From assembly GCF_001194135.2 (NCBI RefSeq), contig NC_068982.1, positions 137,763,067 to 137,827,066 on the forward strand: a stretch of 64,000 nucleotides of DNA, read 5' to 3'. Positions within the stretch are counted from its first letter, which is position 1; every line of letters starts with the position of its first letter. Made by a program: the position numbers and the translations under genes. Positions 6,131-57,951 of the stretch are shown here, in pieces. This DNA comes from Octopus bimaculoides. Taxonomy: Eukaryota. The notes beneath the pieces were generated by a model that searched no databases, was not told where the DNA came from, and saw only the letters and a list, made by a program, of their open reading frames with translations.

Positions 6131-6349
6131 TATAGGATGCAGTGTAAATTATGAGAATATACATAACTCTATAAATGAGATGGAATGTTCCATTAAACTA
6201 TCACAGCCTGTGATATGGGATATCTCAATAATAACCAAACACAAATGACAATGGTCTGTTCTGATGTTTTCTATGCCAAATAAACCGACATTCTAATTAC
6301 TAAGCAAGTTGATTAAATTATCAGAATTAAATTTTTTTTTTTCTTTCAG

Positions 6350-6487
6350 AACCAACAGTGTGCTTATTGGGATGAATCCTCTGGTCAGAAACCACGTTGG
6401 TCAACCAATGGCTGTAATACAACCACCAATGGTCCTGGAGATAAAGTAGTTTGTTCCTGTAATCACCTTACAAGTTTTACTCTACTG
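6350..6487 (+). CDS. Adhesion GPCR exon B (GPS motif): NQQCAYWDESSGQKPRWSTNGCNTTTNGPGDKVVCSCNHLTSFTLL
   Basis: Acceptor ttttctttcag|. Full GPS consensus C-x2-W...W...GC...C-x-C-x-HL|TSF. Donor CTG|gttggt is the only one in phase with the next exon; 138 nt, phase 0-0. Confidence 0.93.
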
Positions 6488-8137: not shown

Positions 8138-8232
8138 GATGTCGAGCAGCCCTCATTTGTTTTGTCACACGTTAGCTGTGGAATATCATTAGTCTTGCAC
8201 ATTCTTATAGCAATTTTTTATGGTTGTATCAA
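8138..8232 (+). CDS. Adhesion GPCR exon C (TM1): DVEQPSFVLSHVSCGISLVLHILIAIFYGCI(K)
   Basis: Acceptor gtctgtttcag| and donor AA|gtaagc; 95 nt, phase 0-2; hydrophobic TM1 with the 'CGISL' motif. Confidence 0.9.
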
Positions 8233-8921
8233 GTAAGCATTTCAATTTCTATTTTCTTTTAAAAACTGTTTAAATACCAAGAGACAGCATCCATCACTTT
8301 GTAGGGTTCTCACAGGCTGGTAAGATCAATGTGGTTGATGTCTATAGGAAAAAACACGAATGAACGGACAATTTCGAAATGTTGTCACTCTGATGAGGAT
8401 TGACAGGACAAATATGGTAGTGTAGGTTTTTTGAGTGACTCTCAGTAAGGATGACATAAAAAAGAGAAAGGGCTAGGGATGAGGGAAGTCTATCATGTGT
8501 ATTTAGTTTATAGCTTGTTAATTCAGAAAATTACAGACCAATAAGGTAGTAACAGTAATGACTCTGTCTCTACTACTACTACTACTCTACCGCTCTCTAC
8601 TATTTTTATGCATTATAATGGTAAGCAAGTTGTTATAGTGTGTTGGTGAGTTAAGATTGATGCTATTCACCCAGATCAACTTCTTTTGAGTGTGGTCTAC
8701 AATATGTGTGTGTGTGTGTAGATAGAGGCAACACCCTCTCATAGAAGTGAGCAGTGCTCTATTTTGAAACTGACTTGAGATTTGTAGAATATCAGCATTT
8801 GCTTAAAGTTAGTCAGTATCGCCTGACCCTAAACAGCAATCTAAGTTTTCCTGACACAGTGTTAGCAATGGTCTATACATACATAATACATACATACATA
8901 CATATATACCTACCTACATAA

Positions 8922-15370: not shown

Positions 15371-15494
15371 AAAGCTGCGGAGATGTTTGGCATCAAAGAT
15401 TTTGATAAGCCTGTGCATTTCATTAGCTGTTGTTAATATCATCTTCCTCATTGGGATGCAGCCTTATGCCTTAAAAACAACAGCTGCTTGTAAG
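15371..15494 (+). CDS. Adhesion GPCR exon D (ICL1-TM2-ECL1): KLRRCLASKILISLCISLAVVNIIFLIGMQPYALKTTAACK
   Basis: Acceptor tgttattcag| and donor AAG|gtaagt; 124 nt, phase 2-0; class B2 TM2 pattern 'I..SLC.SL...N..FL.G'. Confidence 0.93.
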
Positions 15495-15865: not shown

Positions 15866-17739
15866 TGTTTGCATTGATCATCCTTGTGTTCTTTCATTTA
15901 TTGTCAAATGATGACATCCATTTTTATAATTGGAAATACCATGTAATAAATGATCCTTTTTTAACTTGTGGAATTGCATTTTGTTTCATGTTCTCCATCT
16001 TACCCTCACCTCTATGTAGCCCTTCAACATGTCTCTGTTAGGTTCCTATTCAACATTCTTTGAAATTTGTTGTATCTCTTTAAACCATTCTATCTAATAG
16101 GACAGCAAATATTTATTGTTGTTGTTGTTTCAAATTTTGGTACAAAGCCAGAAATTTTCAAAGATTACATTGACTTCACCACTTGACTGGAACTTAAATT
16201 TATCAACCCCGGAAGGATGAAATGCAAATTGATTCTTTTCATCCCTCCAGGGTTCATAAATAGCATACCAGTCAAATATTGGGGATGATGTAGTTGACTA
16301 ACCTCTTGCCCCACACCATAGGAAAATATTCAACCAAACTACATCGTTGTTACTTTCCCTCGCTCTCCAGCTTTTTCAAACACATGGAGTTAGACACACG
16401 CAAACATACTTCAACTTCCTCCTGCATCAGATATTCCCAATATGGAATACCATCTTATGAGGCAACCTAGCATATAAAAAAAATAGACATAGAAGTTTTT
16501 AAAAGATGCATCAGCACCGAACAAGCCACACAACTGTGACATCATGGAAACCACATCCATATTGGACAAGTCCATGACAAATCCACCACCACCACCACCA
16601 GCAACAATAATACACATCTCAACTGAAAAAAAAAAACACAGTAGACTGATACACAAACACAATATAAACAAAACATCTCCAGTCCAAACATTTTGGTGGT
16701 TAGGAATACAAACAAAAGGCTGATGCTCTTTATAGCACATAAGGAAAATGCTGAAATAGAGGGATAAGTTATCATGACCAGCACTTCTAAAGAGCCACAA
16801 AATTTGAAAATAATAAAATTGGACTTGGTGACATACAAAATACTGAGGGAGGATTTCCCTGATGTTCTGTGAAGTCCAAATGAAAGGGCCAACTGTAGGC
16901 TTCTAAAGGATTTCCCTAAGGAAGCTCAAAAGCCTATGGAGACCAAGTCATTTGGTTACTGGTACCACGAAATAGTTAAGTAGTCTGTTTCCTTTTCTCC
17001 TCATTATCTTTTAGCCAACACGGTGGCCCCGAGAATGGAATGTATAAATGCATGTGGATTGGGGTCATTCTGGAAGCAGAGTTGCCTGCTCAATGGCCTC
17101 AGATAACTGGGTTTGGATGTGAAAGCCATCAGTGAGACCAAAATTTCCAAGGTTTCATCCATCCTTACATTCTGAGTTTAAATCTGCTGAGATCAATCTT
17201 GCCTTCATCTCTTTGGGGCCTTGTACCAAAATTTGAAATTATCATTACTATTGTTGTTGTTGTTGTTGTTGTTGTTATCACCATTATAAGTTTAAAAGGA
17301 TTAACGTAACTCCTCACAAAGGTAATTAGACAATACGAAGAGCACAATACAATTACAATAGATATTTTATTTGTTTGAACAATATTTTCGACAGCTTGCC
17401 TGTTTTTGTCGAGTACAAAATGAAAAGTGAAACATAGAAATTCAAAATTTTTGAAATTCAAATTCAAAAATTTAAACGAGGGCAACTTGCATTCCCACAT
17501 TAACGGAATGATATCATCTTTGCTGTACTGAAATATGTGTTCCCATGTTCTGTGATGAAATTTCAGAAGGTTCTCTTTTAATTTTCGACTTTCTGGATTC
17601 AAGACTATAAAATATAAAACTAATACTGATATCAATATAGTTGACTCCACCTCCACCCCTACCCCTCAAATGCAATATATATATTTGAAGCCAAACATGT
17701 CAATGTTAAAAACTTTTATTGTTGTTGTTGTCATTCAAG

Positions 17740-17884
17740 GCAGTGGCTGCTCTGTTACACTACTCCCTTATAGCAACTGTCATGTGGATGGGTATCAAAG
17801 TTTTTCATGCTTATATAGTTTTGGTTACTGAAGGGGAAAGCTACGAAAAATATTTTATGATCGTGAGTTCAATTTTGGCCTGGG
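17740..17884 (+). CDS. Adhesion GPCR exon E (TM3-ICL2-TM4 start): AVAALLHYSLIATVMWMGIKVFHAYIVLVTEGESYEKYFMIVSSILAW(G)
   Basis: Acceptor tcattcaag| and donor TGGG|gtaagt; 145 nt, phase 0-1; 'C.AVAALLHY......WM' TM3 signature. Confidence 0.93.
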
Positions 17885-17929
17885 GTAAGTATAATTTCTA
17901 TCTTCAGTTTTCTATCTTCAGGACACTTT

Positions 17930-23078: not shown

Positions 23079-24060
23079 CTCTACACCATTATCGATCCTA
23101 CCATCTTTAAAGATACTTTTGAAACTAGAAATTAAAATTTTGTTGCTTAAAACAACCCAAACTTAGATTACAGATCTGTTTCACAGTAAAATCCAAGTTT
23201 ACAAAACCAGGAGCGTTAAATCCTGAGTGAAAAGATGACTGTCCTGCTACTTCTGTCTCATCTTGTCTCCAGAAGGAACCCAATAGTTACCCGTTATGCA
23301 CTTTCACCAAATAATAGTCGAGGAGGGTGAATTCCTGTTGTCATCCATGTCATTCTGTCTTCTTACCGGTGTCCAGAACTTCCATGATTTTTCACTTTTT
23401 GCAGCCCTCTGAAACATATAATTGATAGGATCGAAATAGTATATTAGTCGTAGCTATTTCTAGAAACTAAAGAAGTAAATGGCAAGAAGTGAATTGTGTG
23501 TGGTAGGAAATAAAATATTGATTCCTTTTGAACTACTCTTTTACTTGTTTCAGTCATTTGAGGGTGGCCATGCTGGAGCACCGCCTTTACTCGAGCAAAT
23601 TGACCCCAGAACTTATTCTTTGTAAGCCTAGTACTTATTCTATCGGTCACTTTTGCCGAACCGCTAAGTTACGGGGACGTAAACACACCAGCATTGGTTG
23701 TCAAGCGATGGTGGGGGAGCAAAGACAGACACACAAACACACATACATATATATACATATACATATATATGACGGGCTTCTGTCATGTTTCCGTCTACCA
23801 AATCCACTCACAAGGCTTTGGTCGGCCCGAGGCTATAGTAGAAGACACTTGCCCAAGGTGCCACGCAGTGGGACTGAACCCGGAAACAAGTGGTTGGTAA
23901 GCAAGTTACTTACCACACAGCCACTCCTACGCCTATAACTAGACAATTTTCTGGACAAAAACATACTAAACTAAATCAATTCACATATCATGTATTTATG
24001 ATTTCAAATGTTAATTAATATCTAAAGATTCATATTCGTTTCTGTAAATATTATTGTCAG

Positions 24061-24124
24061 GTCTTCCAGCTCTCATTACTCTGGCAGTTAACTTCACAAA
24101 CAATTACATCAGAGTTGCACAAGT
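24061..24124 (+). CDS. Adhesion GPCR exon F (TM4 end-ECL2): (G)LPALITLAVNFTNNYIRVAQ(V)
   Basis: Acceptor ttattgtcag| and donor GT|gtaagt; 64 nt, phase 1-2; joining restores 'WGLP' and 'VCWL' across the junctions. Confidence 0.9.
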
Positions 24125-26117
24125 GTAAGTATTTCGCAGTTTCGTTTACCTCTTTTTTCTCTGATCTTCAAAATTAATATTTTTCTAGACTCATTTATAT
24201 TTTGAAAAACTATAAAATAATGGATAAGCTACCATCACGCTAAAGTCATGACCTTCGCTGTTGATAGTGATCCTACTTCACTAACATTGTTAATGTATTT
24301 TTTTGTTTTTTTTGAGAAACATGGGTCTCAAAGATCACATTTGTCCCTCCTTTCCACTCAATAAGAAATCATAAATATCTCTTTTACTCTTTTACTTGTT
24401 TCAGTCATTTGACTGTGGTCATGCTGGAGCACCGCCTTTACAGTCGAGCAAATCGACCCCCAGGACTTATTCTTTGTAAGCCTAGTACTTTTTCTATCGG
24501 TCTCATTTGCCAAACCGCTAGGTTACAGGGACATAAACATACCAGCATCGATTGTCAAGCGATGTGGTGAGGGGACAAACACAGACACACAGACATATAT
24601 ACACTCACATACATATGTATATACATATGTACAACTGGCTTCTTTCAGTTTCTTATTTCTTTATTGCCCACAAGGGGCTAAACACAGAGGGGACAAACAA
24701 GGACAGACAAAGGGATTAAGTCGATTAGATTGACCCCAGTGTGTAACTGGTACTTAATTTATCGACCCTGAAAGGATGAAAGGCAAAGTCGACCTCGGCG
24801 GAATTTGAACTCAGAACATAACGGCAGACGAAATACTGCAAAGCATTTCACCCGGCGTGCTAACGTTTCTGCCAGCTCGCCACCTTGTTTCAGTTTCTGT
24901 CTACACTCACAAGGCTTTGGACGGCCCGAGGCTATAGTAGAAGACACTTGCCCAAGGTGCCATGCAGTGGGACTGAACCTGGAACCATGTCTATTGACAG
25001 ATAACTTCAAACATGAATACAATCAACATATAAGAATAAAACAAAGCATCATACATTTTTCAACTTAATTATTTACATGGGCGTAGGAGTGGCTGTGTAG
25101 TAAGTAGCTTGCTTACCAACCACATGGTTCCGGGTTCAGTCACACTGCGTGGCATCTTAGGCAAGTGTCTTCTACTATAGCCTCAGGCCGACCAAAGCCT
25201 CGTGAGTAGATTTGGAAGCCCGTCGTATATATGTATATATATATGTATGTGTGTGTATATGTTTGTGTGTGTGTCTGTGTTTGTCCCCCCAACATCGCTT
25301 GACAACTGATGGTGGTGTGTTTATGTCCCTGTAACTTAGCAGTTCGGCAAAAGGGAACGGTAGAATAAGTACTAGGCTTACGAAGAATAAGCTCTGGGGT
25401 CGATTTGCTCGACTATAAAGGCAGTGCTCCAGCATGGCCACAGTCAAAAGACTGAAACAAGTAAAAGAGTAAAAGAGTAAAGAGTACGATACAAAAGATT
25501 GCATTGATTACTAATTATTATTTTTCTTGTATTTTTACAATAATATTAGGAATATTTGACACATAAGCTATTGAAATTTGTTACAACAAACAACTAGCTT
25601 CTCTTTTATCATTGCAAGTGTCAATGAGGAAACAGTCATATAATTAGGTGACAGCCTCAAAGGCTGATAAGTTACTATTTCATCACTTCTGAGTATTCAA
25701 GGCTCTATAGTAATTATCATCATCATCATCATTTAACGTCCGTTTTCCACACTAGCATGGGTTGGACAATTTGACTGAGGTCTGGTGAACCAGAAGGCTG
25801 CACCAGGCTCCAATCTGATCTAGCAGAGTTTCTACAGTTGTATGCCCTTCCTAACGCCAACCACTCCAAGAGTGTAGTGGGTGCTTTTACGTGCCACTAG
25901 CACAAGGGCCAGTCACACGGTACTGGCAACAGCCACACTCAAAATGGTGTTTTTTTACATGCCACCTGCACAGGAGCTAGTCCAGCGGCACTGGCAACAA
26001 CCTTGCTCATGTATGTATGTATGTATGTATGTATGTATGTATGTATGTATGTATGTGTGTGTGTGTATGTGTGTGTGTATGTATGCATGCATGTATGTAT
26101 GTATGCATGTATGTATG

Positions 26118-27762: not shown

Positions 27763-28139
27763 CTGTTGGTTATCCAAGACAACTTTTTACATTACTTTCC
27801 TGACACCTGTGGTGATAGTGTGCATCTTCCATATTATCTTCAGTTTTCTTATACAGAAAATTATGCGAAGACACACCATACAAGAACAGAAAAGAACAGC
27901 TTTTCTTAGCTTCATTTGTGTGTTTTTCCTATTGTTCCTGCTCAGATTCTCATGGTTATTAACATTCTTAGCTTTTGATGAAGCAGCCGAAGTGTTCGAC
28001 AAGCTCTTCAGTATATTCAACCTCTTACAAAGTCTCCTTATCTTCTTATTTTACTGTATAAACGAGAAATATATCAGACATCTCATCTGCAAGTGTGCAT
28101 GGAATCAAGAGGAAGAGAAAACTATGAACAGCAGCCAAA
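27763..28139 (+). CDS. Adhesion GPCR exon G (TM5-TM6-TM7-proximal tail): CWLSKTTFYITFLTPVVIVCIFHIIFSFLIQKIMRRHTIQEQKRTAFLSFICVFFLLFLLRFSWLLTFLAFDEAAEVFDKLFSIFNLLQSLLIFLFYCINEKYIRHLICKCAWNQEEEKTMNSSQ
   Basis: Acceptor atttctttgtag| and donor CAAA|gtaagt; 377 nt, phase 2-1; three hydrophobic helices with 'CWL', 'F..P' and 'FN..Q...IF.FYC' motifs. Confidence 0.93.
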
Positions 28140-28315
28140 GTAAGTGAAATTAAGTACTTTTTTCATTCTTACCACCACCAAAATCATCATGACACCAAAA
28201 TTATCATGATGAGGATAATCACAAACATCACATCTAGCGACACAACCAGTATCGACACCACCTTAGGGTAGACATCATCATAAATACCAACTCTACTGTG
28301 TGTGCATGTGTGCGC

Positions 28316-28353
<38 letters not shown>

Positions 28354-28430
28354 ATATGTATGTGGGTGGGTGTAAAATATACATACACTCATACTTTGAG
28401 TTCTATTTCTCCTGTTTGCACCAACATACC

Positions 28431-28462
<32 letters not shown>

Positions 28463-28999
28463 TAATATGTAATTATATGCATATATCCATACATATATGT
28501 ACATACCTACATCTATATGTATACATACATGCATATATGGGTACAGGACATTAAAAAAAACGTTAAACACAATGAGAAACGAGACANNNNNNNNNNNNNN
28601 NNNNNNNNNNNNNNNNNNNNNNNNNNNNNNNNNNNNNNNNNNNNNNNNNNNNNNNNNNNNNNNNNNNNNNNNNNNNNNNNNNNNNNNNNNNNNNNNNNNN
28701 NNNNNNNNNNNNNNNNNNNNNNNNNNNNNNNNNNNNNNNNNNNNNNNNNNNNNNNNNNNNNNNNNNNNNNNNNNNNNNNNNNNNNNNNNNNNNNNNNNNN
28801 NNNNNNNNNNNNNNNNNNNNNNNNNNNNNNNNNNNNNNNNNNNNNNNNNNNNNNNNNNNNNNNNNNNNNNNNNNNNNTATATATATATATAGCAAGATTA
28901 AAAGAAGATAGAGATATACAATTAACATATTTTAAATTTGATTTATTAAGATTATAATATAATTATGCTATAATATAAAATAAAAAAATAAGAATACAA

Positions 29000-30530
29000 A
29001 AGCAAATATTAGTCCTTCAAGTTGTTTTGATTCATACCCAATAATGAATTTATGGAAACATTCATATTTATGGGTATGAATCTCATCAGGGCAATATTTG
29101 CCAAAAAGAAGCAGACATCTAAGGATTGCTAAATCATAGAATTGTGTTTCTCCAAAATGGATAAACATAAAATCTCATTGAATTCATGAAGATTCTTGTA
29201 AAGAAAACAATAAGTCAAGGGGCTCTTGGATGACATCTTTTGAGTGGTTATCTCCCCTGGATTTGACTTTTGGGCAAACAGTTATGTCGGATGGTAAATT
29301 GTTTGCATTACATTGTATTATATACTGTGTGTATGTGATGTTCATATGCTTGTGTGCTGAGGTAGTTCGTCATGGAGAAATATTTCTTCTGTGTGTGGAG
29401 TTCATGTGTTATGTATATTCAAATTTCACTTTCAGGAAAGGAGCTATCCTTGTGGGATTAGCAGCACAGGTGGTGGTTCCTTTTTGAAGTGTTTAAGTGT
29501 GAAATATTGCTTGTGTATGCAGGGAGAGAACATTTCATCCCTAATATTTAGGATATTATCTATTGGCTGTATTATATTTAATTTTTCAGCGATATGTCTT
29601 TGTATGAAGCTTCTTCATTTGGTTTACTGTAGGGTTCGAATTTGCCTGTGCTAAGGTTCATGTTAATATTTAGAAAATTGACTTCTTTAAGGTTGGTACA
29701 AATTGTGGTTCTCAGACCTAGTTGGCTAAATACTTTGTATAATTTTGTCCTTACTCTATGCATATTATGTCCGTTTTGATTGTGTACCACTCCCAGGCAA
29801 CCTTCCCTATATAAAGCTATACTCTTTTACTTGTTTCAGTCATTTGACTGTGGCCATGCTGGAGCACCGCCATTAGTCGAGCTAATCGACCCCAGGACTT
29901 ATTCTTTCTAAGCCTAGTACTTATTCTATTGATCTCTTTTACTGAACTGCTAAGTTACGGGGACGTAAACACACCAAGTGATGTTGGGGGGGGGGGCGAC
30001 AAACACAAACACATACACACGCATACATATATATATATACATATATACGATGGGCTGCTTTCAGTGTCTGTCCACCAAATCCATTCACAAGGCTTTGGTC
30101 GGCCTGAGGCTATAGTAGAAGACACTTGCCCAAGGTGCCTTGCAGTGGGACTGAACCCGGAACCATGTGGTCCATAAGCAAGCTACTTACCACGCAGCCA
30201 CTCGTACGCCTATGTATGTTAGCTTTTTTTTTTTTTTCTTTTCTAAAGATATCTAAAATATAGAGATCTACAAGATCAGCTATTTCTATGCTCTCATAGC
30301 TCCCCATTGCCACATGAAATAATTCATCCCCCTTCTTCTTTACCCAATAAGAATTATCATAAAAACGTCATGGCTTCCTTGCCTTCATAATTATATTTAT
30401 ATCAGTGTTTGTTATGATAACGTAAGCCTTACTAAATTTACGTGCCTTCTGAAGCAAGCTTTTGGAGACTGAGATGTAAAACTCTATATCAAATTGTATA
30501 AATTTGTATTTGAGTTTACCTTCTATTTTC
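29000..30530 (-). mobile_element. Penelope-like element RT relic, split by a SINE at 29815-30215
   Basis: 'KFIQFDIEFYISVSKSLLQKA...WVKKKGDELFHVAMGSYESIEIADLVDLYILD', then across the SINE 'ANIALYREGCLGV...GLRTTICTNLKEVNFLNINMNLSTGKFEPYSKPN'; left boundary approximate. Confidence 0.8.
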
Positions 30531-30839
30531 TTAAAGTGTTCAATAGTGTGTGTGTGTGTGTGTGTGTGAATGTATGCATGTATACATGCAGATTTGTATG
30601 TTTTGTTTTATATATGTATTCTCATGCATATACTTTCACATCTAGACATGCTCATATAAATTAAAATAATAAACCTCTGGAAAGTTTTACAGATTTTTAC
30701 ACTTCCAGTGATGGATTGGATCTATAGTCTTCGAATCAGTTTTCTCCTTTCTGGTTTTGAGAAGCCTAATTTCTCAAGATTGGTATTTAGGGGTAGTGTG
30801 TTACATATCCTAGTGCCCCAATAATTACAGATATAAACA

Positions 30840-30896
<57 letters not shown>

Positions 30897-32387
30897 AAGC
30901 AAGTACAAATGTGTATCTCTATGTGCATATATGTATGTGAGGTCGATGAAAACGATTTACCCACTGCCCCGAAATTGTTGGTTTTGTGCCCAAATTTGAA
31001 ACCAATATTACTGAAATCTCATAAAGTATCTACTGAGGTTAGCACAGTTGGTAATATGGATAAATTAGAATACAATAGAGTTAATAATAGGGCAAAAAAA
31101 GAGAAATATGTTATTATGTTGGTGTAAACAGGTGAGTTAATGACAATATTTCTGTTTTGTTTTACAGGTGAGTTCATAACAATATTTTTGTTTTACATCT
31201 TTACTAGGTTTACTGATAGGTTATTAATATTATTGGTTTTTAGCCAGATATCTGTCATAATCTGGCAGACTTATGATAAAAAGTGTTCCAAGTGTGACCA
31301 TCCTGTCTTTTTCACTTATTGTAAATCAGTAAATACATTAAACATATCTTCATATCAAAGTATCAAACTTTGGTTTGCTACTAAGATAACCATTCTCTTT
31401 CTGTCTTCAAGATTAGATACAGGCTGCAAGATACAAAATAATAAATACGAAATAACAAATGATAGTGTCATTATCTTTCATCATCTTCTTCCATGCTTCA
31501 ATCGATTACCATGAGTCATCAATGTCCAAGTCAGTTCTTATTCAGAGTTAACATCCACTTTGACTGTTTGAGGTACACATCTCACTTAAATACTTTGGAT
31601 TTTCTATGACAAGATACCCTTCTTAACACCAGCCACTTTATAAAGGATCTTGGGTACGTTTTATTGCAACACAGGCATTAATAAGATTGTCATCATCATT
31701 ACTATTTAACGTCCATTGTCCATGCTAGGATGGGTTGGACAGTTTGACCAGAGCTGGCAAGCTGAGGGGCTGTACCAGACTCCAAGGTCCACAATTAGAT
31801 TGAAGGTTCCACTGAAAATTACAGTGTCTCCTCTCATTCACCAGTCACTTCCAAGTGTGTACTGGGGCCATTTTCTCATAGTGCAAGCACTGGTCAGGTT
31901 GTCTTGCATCTCATATTATTATACAATTCTCATTGCTCTTTGATGTGTTTTTACAATCATGTTGAGAAAGTGAGAAGTTTAAGTGATAACGGAAGAATAA
32001 TGAGGATGCAGGGACTGAAAGTTACAAGAAAATGAGGATAAGAACAATGACTTGAAAGCGAGGTGGAGAATGACATGACTGAATGGTTGAAGCTAAGATA
32101 CAATTATTTATGAGATGGTTAATGATTTACTAACATCTTGAGAATCCAATAATCAAAGACAGTGTTACTTACTACTAGAACATTAGTGTTGGCTTTGGTA
32201 AAGTATGAGGCTCAATCACAAAATCTCAACAAGCATTAGAAAGTCTAACTGTCAAATCATTTGGTCAGTGTTGCTGTGAATGTTCGTAATTGGTAAAAGT
32301 GTAGATTAATAATTATAGCTTTGTGTGTGGATGTGAATGTTGGTAAATTTTACTATAAATTATAACACTTGAAATTATGAATTTCAG

Positions 32388-32654
32388 ACTTACAAATGCA
32401 GGGACAACCAAGGATATCGAAGCAAAGTACATCACCGCAAAGTACATCACAGCAAAGTACATCACCGCAAAGTACATCATCGCAAAGTACATCATCGCAA
32501 AGTACATCACAGCAAAGTACATCACAGCAAAGTACATCACAGCAAAGTACATTACAGCAAAGTATATCACTGCAAAGTACATCACTGCAAAGTACATCAC
32601 AGCAAAGTACATCACAGCAAAGTACATCACAGCAAAGAACACCTCAGCCAGTTG
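32388..32654 (+). CDS. Adhesion GPCR exon H (Ser/Thr/Gln-rich cytoplasmic repeat exon): (N)LQMQGQPRISK(QSTSx)14QRTPQPV
   Basis: Acceptor atgaatttcag| and donor GTTG|gtgagt; 267 nt, symmetric phase 1-1, open in the frame required by exons G and I; splice flanks homologous to those of exon I. No transcript evidence. Confidence 0.72.
32423..32647 (+). repeat. 15-bp coding minisatellite CAAAGTACATCACAG x14 plus 1 degenerate unit
   Basis: Units counted directly at 15-bp spacing from 32423; lies within exon H. Confidence 0.95.
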
Positions 32655-33213
32655 GTGAGTATAAAAGTGAAGTACCAAATTGATTTCTATAAGTCTTCCC
32701 TTCAGCACTAGCACTGGTCAGGTTTTCTTGCATCTCATAAAATTAGACAGTTCTTACTGCTCTTAAGATGTGTTTTTTCATTCAAGGTAACATGTTGAGA
32801 AGTGATGACAGAAGAATAATGAGGATGCAGGGACTGAAAGTTGTGAGAAAATGAGGATAAGAACAATGACTTGAAAGCGAGGTGGAGAATGACAAGACTG
32901 AGTGATTGTCAGTTGTAAGCCAACAGAGATGATTAATGATGTATTAACATCTTGGGAAACTGATAATTAAAGTCAAAAGTACTTATAAGAACATCATTCT
33001 CAGCTTTCTAATGTAGGAGATTCAATAACAAATCTCAACTGAAAATGTTTTTAACTGGTTAAAATTGTTAAAGATAATTTCATTTGTTTACAAAATCATT
33101 CTCCTGAAGTTCTTGATTTATCATCTTATGAAGATGTCAGATGTTCGGTATGAGATATCATCTCTCGTTGGAGTATCTTCTCAGAAGGTCTCAGGTTAGA
33201 ATATATATTATAG

Positions 33214-33249
<36 letters not shown>

Positions 33250-36130
33250 ACTGAGAATGCATGTGTGTGTGCATGTAAATGTGTGTCTGTTTGTGTGTGT
33301 GCATCACTAAAACTCAGGAACTACTCAAACGATTTCATTCAAATTTTACACACGCCCTATTTAAGGTCCATGCAGTGTCATGGGCCAAAAAGATTTTCAA
33401 CTTCTTGCCTAATGTGAGCCTGGAGCAATCTCTTATCTCTTACACTATTTCGGTATTACCTGTCAAAAGTGAAACAATAAAATCGCTATTGTAATGTGAG
33501 AGAATACTTTCACTGTGATATATTTTTGTATGTATATGTATCATCATCATCATCATCGTCGTCATTTAACGTCCGCTTTCCATACTAGCATGGGTTGGAC
33601 GATTTGACTGAGGACTGGTGAAACCAGATGGCTACACCAGGCTCCAATCTGATTTGGCAGAGTTTCTACAGCTGGATGCCCTTCCTAACGCTAACCACTC
33701 TGAGAGTGTAGTAGGTGCTTTTACATGCCACCGGCACGAAGGCCAGTCAGGTGGTACCAGCAACGGCCACGCTCAAAATGGTGTATTTTACGTGCCACCT
33801 GCACAGGAGCCAGTTCGGCGGCACTGCCAATGATCTCGCTCGAATGTCTTTACACGTGCCATNNNNNNNNNNNNNNNNNNNNNNNNNNNNNNNNNNNNNN
33901 NNNNNNNNNNNNNNNNNNNNNNNNNNNNNNNNNNNNNNNNNNNNNNNNNNNNNNNNNNNNNNNNNNNNNNNNNNNNNNNNNNNNNNNNNNNNNNNNNNNN
34001 NNNNNNNNNNNNNNNNNNNNNNNNNNNNNNNNNNNNNCAATGAAGGAGACGATGTTGGCATGGGTGCCAGTCGTCGAATTTAGTTCGATTTCGATTTCAC
34101 TTTCCTCAACAGGTCTTCGCAAGTGGAGTTTAGTGTCCAATGAAGGAAGGTACGTATGAGTGGGCTGCCTGAGGCCTTGGATTTAGGTCTCACTTGGCTT
34201 GTCTGGTCTTCTCACGCACAGCATATTTCCAAAGGTCTCGGTCAGAAGTCATCGCCTCGGTGAGGCCCAATGTTCGAAGGTCATGCCTCACCACCTCATC
34301 CCAGGTCTTCCTGGGCCTACCTCTTCCACAGGTTCCCTCCAATGCTAGGGTGTGGCACTTTTTCACACAGCTATCCTCATCCAATGCATGTATATGTATG
34401 TTTATATGTCTATGCATACATATCAGATCAGACTGGAGCCTGGTGCAGCCTTCTGGCTTGCCAGCCCTCAATCAGACCTCCAATCCCTGCCAGCATGGAA
34501 AGCGGATATTAAAAGACAATGATGATGATGGGACTTCTACAATATAGATCTGTGCTGAGACACAATCATATTCATTGTAATGAAAGTCACTGATTTTTTT
34601 AGTCAGATTATATATAATCTATATAGATATCTAGTATTGCAAGGTCAGACAGTGTAATTTTGTATTATATATATACCCTGTTAACATGATAATGAATCAG
34701 ATATTATTCATTAACTGTTTTACATTTGTATGTCTGAAATTTAACCTTATTTTGTCATAGCATCATCTTGTACCCTCACCCAACAGGTTTAAACCTTGTT
34801 ACCATTTGTGTAAGTAATTCTAATGTTTTTCTTGGGCATGCAACCACTTCTCTACAAACTGGGATTATTGACTTCTATAGTCCAATAAGGTCCAGATGTT
34901 ATTGTGTCCTAGCTTCATTCCAAATGAAACAAAATGTGAAGCATTTCTGTATATTTATGATACTATTTAGGTATATTTTATAAAGTATTACGGTGACTTT
35001 TTGTAATTAGTTGGTCTTAATTAACATTAGTGACAAATGTAGTATAACAGAGGTAATGTGAATGGGATTACACATTCCTCGTGATGTTGTTCTTATATTA
35101 ACAATAACATCACAAAGACAAGTTTCTGTCAGTCAGACCCTTCTACACAGGTGTAAGTTCCAAGTCCAAATTTACTGGTTACTCGGTTTCTACCCTATCA
35201 ATGTCAACCACATTGATAAAGGAGATATCAAAGAGGAAGGTAACTTTGTTTGATGTATAGATGAGATTTAAATAGAGGTAACCTATATTCTTGAGAATAA
35301 GTTCTTTTGTACCATTCCAGATATCTTTGTCACAATATATGGATGATCGCTTATATGCAGTTTATGAGATTGAGTGCAAGTGCACAGTGTTTTATGGCAC
35401 ATTACCACTGTCCATTTCACCTGTGTAGATCTAATCATTGTTCACCTGAAAAGAAACTGCTTTATTAAGGAGGATGAATGACAAGCAAATGTTTTCAAAT
35501 ATTTCAAGAATCAGATGACATTCTGGTGAACTGTAACGTGGGCGGTTAAAATTAAAGATTACCAGTGGCAACCTTTAACAGAGAGAGAGAGAGACAGACA
35601 GAGAGACAGAGACAGAGAGATATATATATAGAGAGAGACAGAGAGAGACACAGAGAGAGAGCAGGTATATGATGATCCTAAATGAAGTGGTGTGTCATGT
35701 GTTTGTGGCTAGATCTTAGATGGACAACCTGGTTGACATTGGAATTAAGCAGATGATGAGAAGAATATTGGTTAGTAAAGTCTAGAAGTGAGAGGATATA
35801 GATATGACTGAAATATAATAAATGAAAGACAAAACTAAATGATAAAAATCCTTAACAATTGGTAAATAAATTAGATAATTGCAACATTGTTAGATTAAGT
35901 AGGATGTCTTAATATAGAGAGGAGATTTAGGAAGACTAGTTTGCTCTGTTGTAGACCTAAATATCAAGTTATTACATGGTACCACTGTAGAAAGTATAAA
36001 AATGTTGACTGAAATCACAGTGGTCACCAGTTGACCATTAATGATAGGAATATCTCACAACATTGAAATATGAATTCCAATAGAGATATAGAAATTTAAC
36101 TATTAAGTGTAAAACTTGGAAATATTTCAG

Positions 36131-36202
36131 AGAATTCAAGGCTGACCGAATCGGATCTCCTACAGGTGGCAAAACATTTAGGACCAAACTGGAAGCATGT
36201 TG
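36131..36202 (+). CDS. Adhesion GPCR exon I (Death domain, N-terminal part): (E)NSRLTESDLLQVAKHLGPNWKHV(G)
   Basis: Acceptor aatatttcag| and donor GTTG|gtaagt; 72 nt, phase 1-1; 'L..VA..LG..WK..G' Death-domain helix 1-2 pattern. Confidence 0.85.
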
Positions 36203-36659
36203 GTAAGTATAAAATAAGAATACTTAATTGATTTCTATAAGTTTTACCTACAGTTGAACTTTTGTTTGCTAGAATGACTGTGAACTGGTTCCATTCCTAA
36301 TTTCCAATTGAAAGATTAACTGTAATGTAATTCTATAAAAGATACTGATATTACTGAAATTTCATAAAATATCTACGGAGGTTAGTAATGAAACAACACA
36401 ATACAGTTGATATTGTCTTTTGGAATTGGGAACTGAAATACACCATTGTGTTGGTATAAGCAGGCGAGTTAATGGTAATGTCTTTGTTTTACATTTTTTT
36501 CTGAGTTTGTTGATGTTATTGCTGTTTAGCCAGATGTTTATTGTAATTTGGTTGACATATGATAAAAAGTCTTCTATTTGTGAAATCCCCGACTTGTTTG
36601 TGGGAGCATGTTATCAAATGTATCCTTTATAACACGATAGGGTGTATTTTGAGTGAAGT

Positions 36660-37770: not shown

Positions 37771-37976
37771 GTATCTTTCTGGGCATTGATTTAGTCAGCC
37801 TAGAAAATATCAAGCATGATCATGCTAATAACAGTCGAGAACAGAGCTTTCAGATGCTAACAACATGGTTTAGAGGCTCCGATTGTAAGACAGATAGAGT
37901 TGAAATACTCAGAGAAGCTATTGAAAATGCTGAGTGTTACTATGCACTTGAACATCTACCAAAAGACATAAAGTAA
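37771..37976 (+). CDS. Adhesion GPCR exon J (rest of Death domain, stop): (G)IFLGIDLVSLENIKHDHANNSREQSFQMLTTWFRGSDCKTDRVEILREAIENAECYYALEHLPKDIK*
   Basis: Acceptor tgtcttttgcag|, phase 1; 'LG.....E.I......EQ..QML..W.......L..A' Death-domain pattern; TAA at 37974-37976 and AATAAA at 38123. AA|gtaaat at the end could instead be a donor. Confidence 0.87.
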
Positions 37977-56653: not shown

Positions 56654-57951
56654 TATTGGATCATTCCATAAATAATATGGTTTTTCTCAATTGCATGAAC
56701 TAAAAGTCGGATGGGCATGGGATAAAGTACCTGCGTCAACTTGCAATAAAAACAGGTATTAATTTTACCTTGTACTTATTCTTAGTGCAAGTTTTGAAGA
56801 GTACAGTTCGATTTTAACAGTTATTTTTTCAAAGCTATAATAGAAGTGACAAATGAGCATATTCGGCAAATTTTGCTTTATGAGTTCAATAAAGGCAACA
56901 ATGCAATGGAAAGTGTGAGGAATATTAATTCAGTATATGGCGATTGGGTAGTAAGCATAAGTGAATGTCAACAATCACTCCAGAAATTCCAAGCTGGAAA
57001 CTACAGCCTAGAAGACGAGCCTCATCCTAGAAGATCTGTAGAGCTTCGTAAGGATATCCTGCAAACCCTGGTGGAACAAAATCCCATCATAACTGCTGAA
57101 GAACTAGCAAAGAATCTTGGATTTGGTCGTTCAACAATTTGTCGATACCTGCATACCATCAGAAAAGTCAGTAAATTGGGTCAATGGGTTCCTCACAATC
57201 TTTTCGAGTCTAATCACATGCAAAGAGTGAACGTGTGCTCTTCTTTGCTGTTCCATCTAATGAATAAACCTTTTTGGGATTTAATAGTGACTGATGACAA
57301 GAAATAGGTTCTCTATAAAAATGTCAAGTGCCGAAGACAGTGGGTAGGCAAAGGAGAAACACTTGGCACCCCAGGCTAAAGAAGGTCTTCACCCACATAA
57401 GGTGTTGTTATCTGTTTGGTGGGAAATGAAAGGTTTAGTCCACTTTGAACTTTTAAACCCAAACCAAACGATAACAAAGGAGATCTACTGCAAGCAGTTT
57501 GAGGGGCTTAAGCCAAAGCTAGAAGAAAAATAACCATCTTCGGTTTTAAGACGAAAGGTGTTCTTCCATCAGGATAATGCTCGGCCACATACAGTGAGGA
57601 TGACATTCCAAAGGCTGGAGCAGTTTGAATGGGAAAACATGCTCCACCCACCATGTTTGCCAGACATTGCCCCATCTGATTATCGTTTATTCTGCAGTCT
57701 TCAAAATTATTTGGACAGAAAAAATATGAATTCTATAGACAAGGTCAGAACAATACTGGAGGAGTATTTTTTGTCATGGACAAGTGAATTCTGGAAGAGG
57801 GCTCTTGCAAGTTTACCAGATAGATGGAAGAGCATTGTAGAAAATGAAGGAGAGTATATTTTAGATCTAGAAAAAAAGAACATTTTTTATCTTAATTTTG
57901 AAAAATAAAAGAAGTATAAAAAAGCTGCATTATTTATGGGATGACTGTATA
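56654..57951 (+). mobile_element. Near full-length mariner (DD34D-type) transposon, disrupted
   Basis: ORFs 56846-57307 (HIRQILLYEFNKG...KLGQWVPHNL...IVTDDKK) and 57558-57908 (FHQDNARPH...HPPCLPDIAPSDYRLF); stops and frameshifts; degenerate TIRs TATTGGATCATTCCATAAATAAT / ATTATTTATGGGATGACTGTATA. Confidence 0.9.

Follow-up and report, generated by a model that had tools for sequence, protein, structure and literature searches.

Coding minisatellites, or variable-number tandem repeats (VNTRs), occur in disordered regions of proteins, as illustrated by the mucin tandem repeats and, in the dopamine D4 receptor, by the 48-bp repeat of the third cytoplasmic loop. An annotated exon which is probably of this kind, called exon A below, lies in the 64-kb stretch of Octopus bimaculoides DNA analysed here (the window). 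As in the mucin and dopamine D4 VNTRs, its units are arranged head to tail and a multiple of three in length, and the frame is kept when their number changes. Their product is likewise of low complexity and rich in Ser, Thr, Pro and Gln, and the copy number differs between close species. Unlike in these systems, the octopus unit is short (15 bp, five residues), and its array is located in an adhesion GPCR, in the part of the cytoplasmic tail that precedes a death domain.

Three other described systems bear on the locus. In GPCR C-terminal tails, clusters of Ser and Thr of the PxPxxP and PxxPxxP classes have been described as arrestin phosphorylation codes (PMC8795447, PMC7913897). The octopus array resembles them in lying after TM7 with suitably spaced Ser/Thr residues, but its putative codes are generated by the repeat and are not conserved. 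Like PIDD1, RIPK1, CRADD, Fas, UNC5 and ankyrin, the octopus protein has a C-terminal domain that passes the Pfam Death threshold; unlike in those proteins, the death domain is joined to a seven-helix receptor via a repeat linker. The third system is the octopus-specific "group 3" adhesion-GPCR expansion (Ritschard et al. 2019, PMC6408891), to which the very same gene, under the identifier Ocbimv22014869m, belongs; its expression is mainly in skin and sucker.

Exon A belongs to O. bimaculoides LOC106882527 (Table 1). This gene codes for an adhesion GPCR of the LRR-GPS-7TM type which ends in a death domain. A HMMER scan with the contiguous TM5–7 exon gave a 100%-identity match to the protein P0002, which is XP_014788728.1 (named "GPR126-like", 1283 aa), and the corresponding cluster at 90% has three members, all from O. 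bimaculoides. The longest protein in the cluster, XP_052821851.1 (LOC106882527, 1535 aa), starts with a hydrophobic N-terminus followed by LRRs, and the order of parts is read as signal peptide, LRRs, GPS, 7TM, tail and death domain. A third model is the UniProt entry A0A0L8FLR8 (1183 aa), which is Ocbimv22014869m. The Pfam matches to GPS (56.5 bits), 7tm_2 (25.0 bits) and Death (PF00531, 31.2 bits for a cut-off of 22.6) were each above the gathering cut-off. The GPS is directly ahead of the secretin-type 7TM, as in adhesion GPCRs (class B2), and the domain order is the same in the protein P0152. The GPS, 7tm_2 and LRR domains together identify the product as a plasma-membrane receptor. The nearest solved relative of the death domain was that of PIDD (2of5_H, E = 2.5e-7), followed by those of RIPK1 and CRADD. 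Of the 150 other nearest 7TM relatives, not one carries this C-terminal death domain, and among these the fusion of a GPCR to a death domain looks unique to LOC106882527. The host protein is more unusual than the repeat; coding minisatellites in disordered tails are familiar.

Part of this architecture has been published. A one-line mention in PMC6408891 reports that a single sequence from O. bimaculoides carries a death domain, and the tables of the same paper list GPS, 7tm_2, LRR and death domain for Ocbimv22014869m, the GPS–7tm_2 order being given in Table S3. The 7tm_2 domain is placed at 742–970 and the Death domain at 1102–1178, a spacing which requires the 89-residue exon. Table S2 gives the gene a tissue specificity tau of 0.96, with expression shares of 0.71 for skin and 0.17 for sucker. 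The repeat exon is not mentioned in PMC6408891. Text searches found no paper naming the identifiers of the gene, and returned PMC6408891 only for adhesion GPCRs with a death domain. The gene, exon A and the death domain are in public records already; what appears to be undescribed is that exon A is repetitive and that the number of units jumps from one to about 15 between two Octopus species.

Table 1. Features of the host gene and of exon A (coordinates are positions in the window unless stated otherwise).
Feature	Position	Strand	Details
GPS (autoproteolysis motif) exon	about 6347..6487	+	
TM exons	about 8138-8233, 15372-15494, 17737-17886, 24048-24125	+	
TM5-TM7 exon (7tm_2)	27763..28139	+	phase-1 donor CAAA/gtaagt at 28139
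Acceptor region (…TATAACACTTGAAATTATGAATTTCAG) of exon A	32340..32387	+	near-invariant in all four O. vulgaris copies
Exon A (QSTS exon)	32388..32654	+	267 nt = 89 x 3, phase 1 at both ends; from sequence and translation
Exon A in the protein	residues ~1355-1443 of XP_052821851.1		exact match to P0002, P0152 and P0153
14 in-frame 15-bp units	32423..32632	+	consensus CAA AGT ACA TCA CAG (QSTSx)
Degenerate last unit and exon end	32633..32654	+	CAAAGAACACCTCAG CCAGTTG = QRTPQPV
Exon A donor GTGAGT and intron start	32655..32705	+	conserved in O. vulgaris
Death-domain exon 1 (NSRLTESDLLQVAKHLGPNWKHV)	36131..36202	+	phase 1 at both ends
Last exon	37771..37976	+	remainder of death domain and TAA stop

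Exactly the same boundaries of exon A were present in the three public models out of three (XP_052821851.1, XP_014788728.1 and A0A0L8FLR8/Ocbimv22014869m), which were produced by two pipelines independent of each other, that of JGI and NCBI Gnomon. All three proteins read ...TMNSSQ-N-LQMQGQPRISKQSTSP...QQRTPQPV-E-NSRLTESDLL... across the exon. Exon A is thus annotated as coding, between the 7TM and the death domain, which is where the initial annotation of this DNA had placed it, and the predicted gene models of the two pipelines suggest that it is included in the mature mRNA. Its splice junctions are aatttcAG/AC at 32386–32389 and GTTG/GTgagt at 32651–32660. Phase 1 is found throughout, at the 28139 donor, at both ends of exon A and at the 36131 acceptor, so that the frame is kept with or without the exon. 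The earlier proposal of a symmetric, skippable exon therefore holds as regards phase. No isoform skipping exon A is annotated: the 90% cluster contains the inclusion form only, and the NCBI name carries no isoform label.

One array was detected by Tandem Repeats Finder, at 32421–32641, with a period of 15, 14.7 copies, 93% matches, 0% indels and a score of 365. The consensus unit, AGCAAAGTACATCAC, occurred 14 times in the 64-kb window when up to two mismatches were allowed, always at the site of the array, whereas 0.31 occurrences were expected by chance (dinucleotide shuffles). A window-wide search did not find this unit elsewhere as a dispersed satellite or transposon. The units are whole and in register, and since 15 bp correspond to five codons, gains and losses of whole units preserve the frame, as had been anticipated. 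Read in the phase-1 frame, exon A codes for LQMQGQPRISK, then for the 14 units, then for QRTPQPV. The order of the units, where a QSTSx unit may be abbreviated to its fifth residue, is QSTSP, Q, P, S, S, Q, Q, Q, QSTLQ, QSISL, QSTSL, Q, Q, Q. Twelve of the 14 are strict QSTSx units and the remaining two are QSTLQ and QSISL, in agreement with the count of 14 first given for the array. Ser, Thr, Gln and Pro make up 84% of the 89-residue segment, with 30 Ser, 14 Thr and 27 Gln in a product of about 90 residues. The tandem copies are far beyond chance expectation, the unit length is a multiple of three and the copy number differs between species. The array is real and would be a coding minisatellite of young age, of a rather ordinary kind.

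The spliced tail of 306 residues was compared to proteins in a word-indexed search, which returned the O. vulgaris fragment P0001 alone and no death-domain-bearing ortholog. The tail of P0001, ...GRELPPRLEQLGTTRQSTSPSNEVLLDLSSYEDVTFLR, contains one QSTSP. The O. vulgaris locus of P0001 (L001, in OX597815.1) was treated as the ortholog because it is collinear with the window, with 82–92% nucleotide identity over the whole gene. The O. vulgaris exon A, at L001 39117–39182, measures 66 nt and has a single CAAAGTACATCACCG (QSTSP) unit; its product, ...TTRQSTSPSN, has one unit and no complete arrestin code. The acceptor tract, the GTGAGTATAAAA donor and the phase are the same as those of O. bimaculoides, and the frame in which the homologous exon is annotated in O. 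vulgaris is also the same. The QRTPQPV-coding stretch which ends the O. bimaculoides exon aligns to the lone O. vulgaris unit and its tail (CAAAGTACATCACCG TCAAATG = QSTSPSN). The lengths add up accordingly, to 35 + 14 x 15 + 22 = 267 nt in O. bimaculoides and to 44 + 22 = 66 nt in O. vulgaris, the difference in repeat number being 14 extra units. The length variation suspected at the start was thereby found between species, with 14 units and a degenerate one in O. bimaculoides versus one unit in each of four O. vulgaris copies of the exon.

These four copies belong to a unit of approximately 3.1 kb, amplified in O. vulgaris (L001 35700–52844), which contains exon A together with exon B, a short terminal exon (EVLLDLSSYEDVTFLR followed by a stop codon). 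The L001 locus, which ends within the tandem array of 3.1-kb units, includes four copies of exon A and five of exon B, and a further unit begins at the locus end; O. bimaculoides has a single unit. The copies are 94–99% alike among themselves versus 87–92% to O. bimaculoides, which indicates that the amplification took place after the species split. Their exon A lengths are 66, 66, 65 and 65 nt, and both 65-nt copies break the frame. Further upstream, a 5-nt frameshifting deletion in the O. vulgaris TM3–4 exon (window 17815–17840, L001 9964–9979) would explain the split of the O. vulgaris gene into two models. The O. vulgaris gene may be decaying or a pseudogene, or an assembly error may lie behind the 5-nt deletion. 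Because of this deletion, conservation in O. vulgaris may not reflect selection.

The array is open in all three plus frames and in one minus frame. This openness is a by-product of the repeat and is consequently no evidence of coding, and with all the plus frames open, a gene predictor could accept exon A without RNA support. The exon might in that case be a pseudo-exon, an intronic minisatellite taken up by the predictors on account of its open frame, its AG/GT sites and its phase, and the mRNA would join 28139 to 36131. Skipping of exon A stays in frame, the exon body evolves faster than the adjoining intron, and the frame is broken in two of the four O. vulgaris copies, three observations that agree with such an origin. 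We nevertheless consider it distinctly unlikely. The exon is present in models from both the JGI and the NCBI Gnomon pipelines, and its homologue is used in the same frame by the O. vulgaris annotation. The acceptor tract and the donor are almost invariant across the species and the four O. vulgaris copies, whereas the exon body diverges. The length difference in the 5' part of exon A between the two species is 9 nt, a multiple of three which keeps the frame.

The explanation that we favour, and hold to be probable, is that of a real exon encoding a Ser/Thr/Gln-rich disordered linker, recently expanded by slippage in a frame-neutral manner. The ancestral exon A would have been short (66 nt, one unit), as it is in O. 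vulgaris. We infer that, in the O. bimaculoides lineage, the 15-bp unit grew to 14 units and one degenerate unit, most likely by slippage during replication or by unequal exchange. With two species compared and no outgroup, expansion in O. bimaculoides is the simplest reading of the direction of change, and contraction in O. vulgaris the alternative. The expansion would be tolerable since the unit is exactly five codons and exon A has phase 1 at both ends. The resulting 89-residue segment is almost certainly intrinsically disordered. With it, the cytoplasmic linker that joins helix 7/8 to the death domain would grow from some 40 to some 130 residues. The segment would be chiefly a flexible spacer with few constraints on its sequence, with a possible secondary role as a multi-site Ser/Thr phosphorylation target. 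If so, the locus offers a clean, datable case of a frame-neutral minisatellite lengthening the cytoplasmic linker of a receptor in a lineage-specific, fast-evolving gene family. The repeat alone is ordinary; its value would lie in a natural length series for the effects of linker length and of Ser/Thr content on death-domain signalling. As it marks an unusual GPCR–death-domain fusion expressed in skin and suckers, a functional study may be deserved.

The non-repeat parts of exon A showed 54–73% identity between the species, versus 87–92% for the flanking intron. Within the array, the differences between units are 100% amino-acid-changing (P, Q, S or L at position 5, S to L, T to I). This divergence of the exon parts beyond the flanking intron, together with a unit variation that is entirely amino-acid-changing, points to a weak sequence constraint on exon A. 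The synonymous versus non-synonymous signal within the array was not significant, the events being too few; in the upstream exons, dN/dS between the species is approximately 0.5, with a dS of approximately 0.13. The length and the composition of the segment, supposing that they have any importance, would weigh more than the precise sequence. The regular Ser/Thr spacing could on the other hand be functional and not neutral, which would count against a mere spacer.

Such a function could be that of a phosphorylation array, as suggested in the initial annotation. The QSTSx units would then be multi-site targets of the GRK or CK1 type and constitute repeated arrestin codes, which would regulate desensitisation or the access to the death domain, the number of units representing the dose. 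The idea appears compatible with the exon A product: the array is in the cytoplasmic tail just past TM7, with 44 Ser/Thr in 90 residues, and 15 PxPxxP and four PxxPxxP patterns are present. However, a PxPxxP pattern arises automatically from any Ser/Thr-rich repeat of period 5. The cluster of codes is not conserved, since the O. vulgaris exon, with its single unit (QSTSPSN), is devoid of a complete code, and the unit variants QSTLQ and QSISL hit Ser/Thr positions. We regard a phosphorylation array as the main explanation as unlikely.

Nine SQ dipeptides and no TQ are found in the exon A product. The usual criterion for an SQ/TQ cluster domain is at least three SQ/TQ per 100 residues, which nine SQ in 90 residues exceed. 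The segment could then be phosphorylated by kinases of the ATM/ATR family, or, being composed of 30% Gln and 33% Ser, act as a prion-like low-complexity domain nucleating death-domain oligomers; death domains signal via oligomeric assemblies such as the PIDDosome, the closest solved relative. The SQ dipeptides stem, however, from the derived CAG-ending variant of a unit whose ancestral form has Pro as its last residue. ATM and ATR are found mainly in the nucleus, whereas the receptor is a protein of the plasma membrane, and the single-unit ortholog lacks all these features. The dipeptides noticed at first sight are a by-product of the dominant CAG-ending unit, and their interpretation as ATM/ATR sites is unlikely; that the segment acts as an SQ/TQ cluster or prion-like domain is, in our opinion, hardly credible. 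A bolder combination can be imagined, in which a fast-evolving, multiply phosphorylated arrestin-code array would work as a species-specific rheostat, the number of units tuning the hand-over from the skin and sucker adhesion GPCR to a PIDD/RIPK1-like death-domain signalosome. A GPCR would then signal to a death domain by a direct route, which has not been described elsewhere, and we estimate this combination as highly improbable.

Several minor observations were made along the two loci. The other exons of the gene show 90–95% nucleotide identity between the species. The TM5–7 exon, aligned to L001 33690–34037, has about 68% protein identity, in a surrounding stretch of 81% nucleotide identity, and O. 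vulgaris has approximately 19 kb of extra intron just upstream of this exon. A SINE-like element is present in many copies in the window, which also has eight N gaps totalling 1992 N. Transposase remnants are located on the plus strand at 56798–57905 and 2186–2500, of Mos1/mariner type (HTH_48, 59 bits) and Tc3-like.

A relic of exon B (VLDLSSYEDV…) is visible in the window at 33103–33150 on the plus strand; its O. vulgaris counterpart is the terminal exon mentioned above. The acceptor AG of the relic is now TG, but the frame would be kept with an AG located 3 nt downstream. The relic is devoid of a counterpart to the 18 bases, stop codon included, which come after GATGTCA in O. vulgaris. A tail ending in ...VLDLSSYEDVRCSV and a stop, and thus lacking the death domain, is theoretically possible through this relic.

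The donor of exon A and approximately the first 50 nt of the following intron (32651–32705) are about 80% identical to the corresponding segment of death-domain exon 1 (36199–36253), with a score of 44 versus 19 +/- 2.5 for shuffles. Exon A was considered as a possible duplicate of death-domain exon 1; the exon bodies do not align, the similarity being confined to the donor and approximately 50 nt of intron. The likeness of the donor flanks may stem from an exon duplicated in part, or from an intronic element common to both. Finally, exon A is flanked by two segments of approximately 340 bp (31886–32230 and 32710–33039) which are 78% identical to each other. The same duplication is present in every O. 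vulgaris 3.1-kb unit, and it therefore predates the species split.
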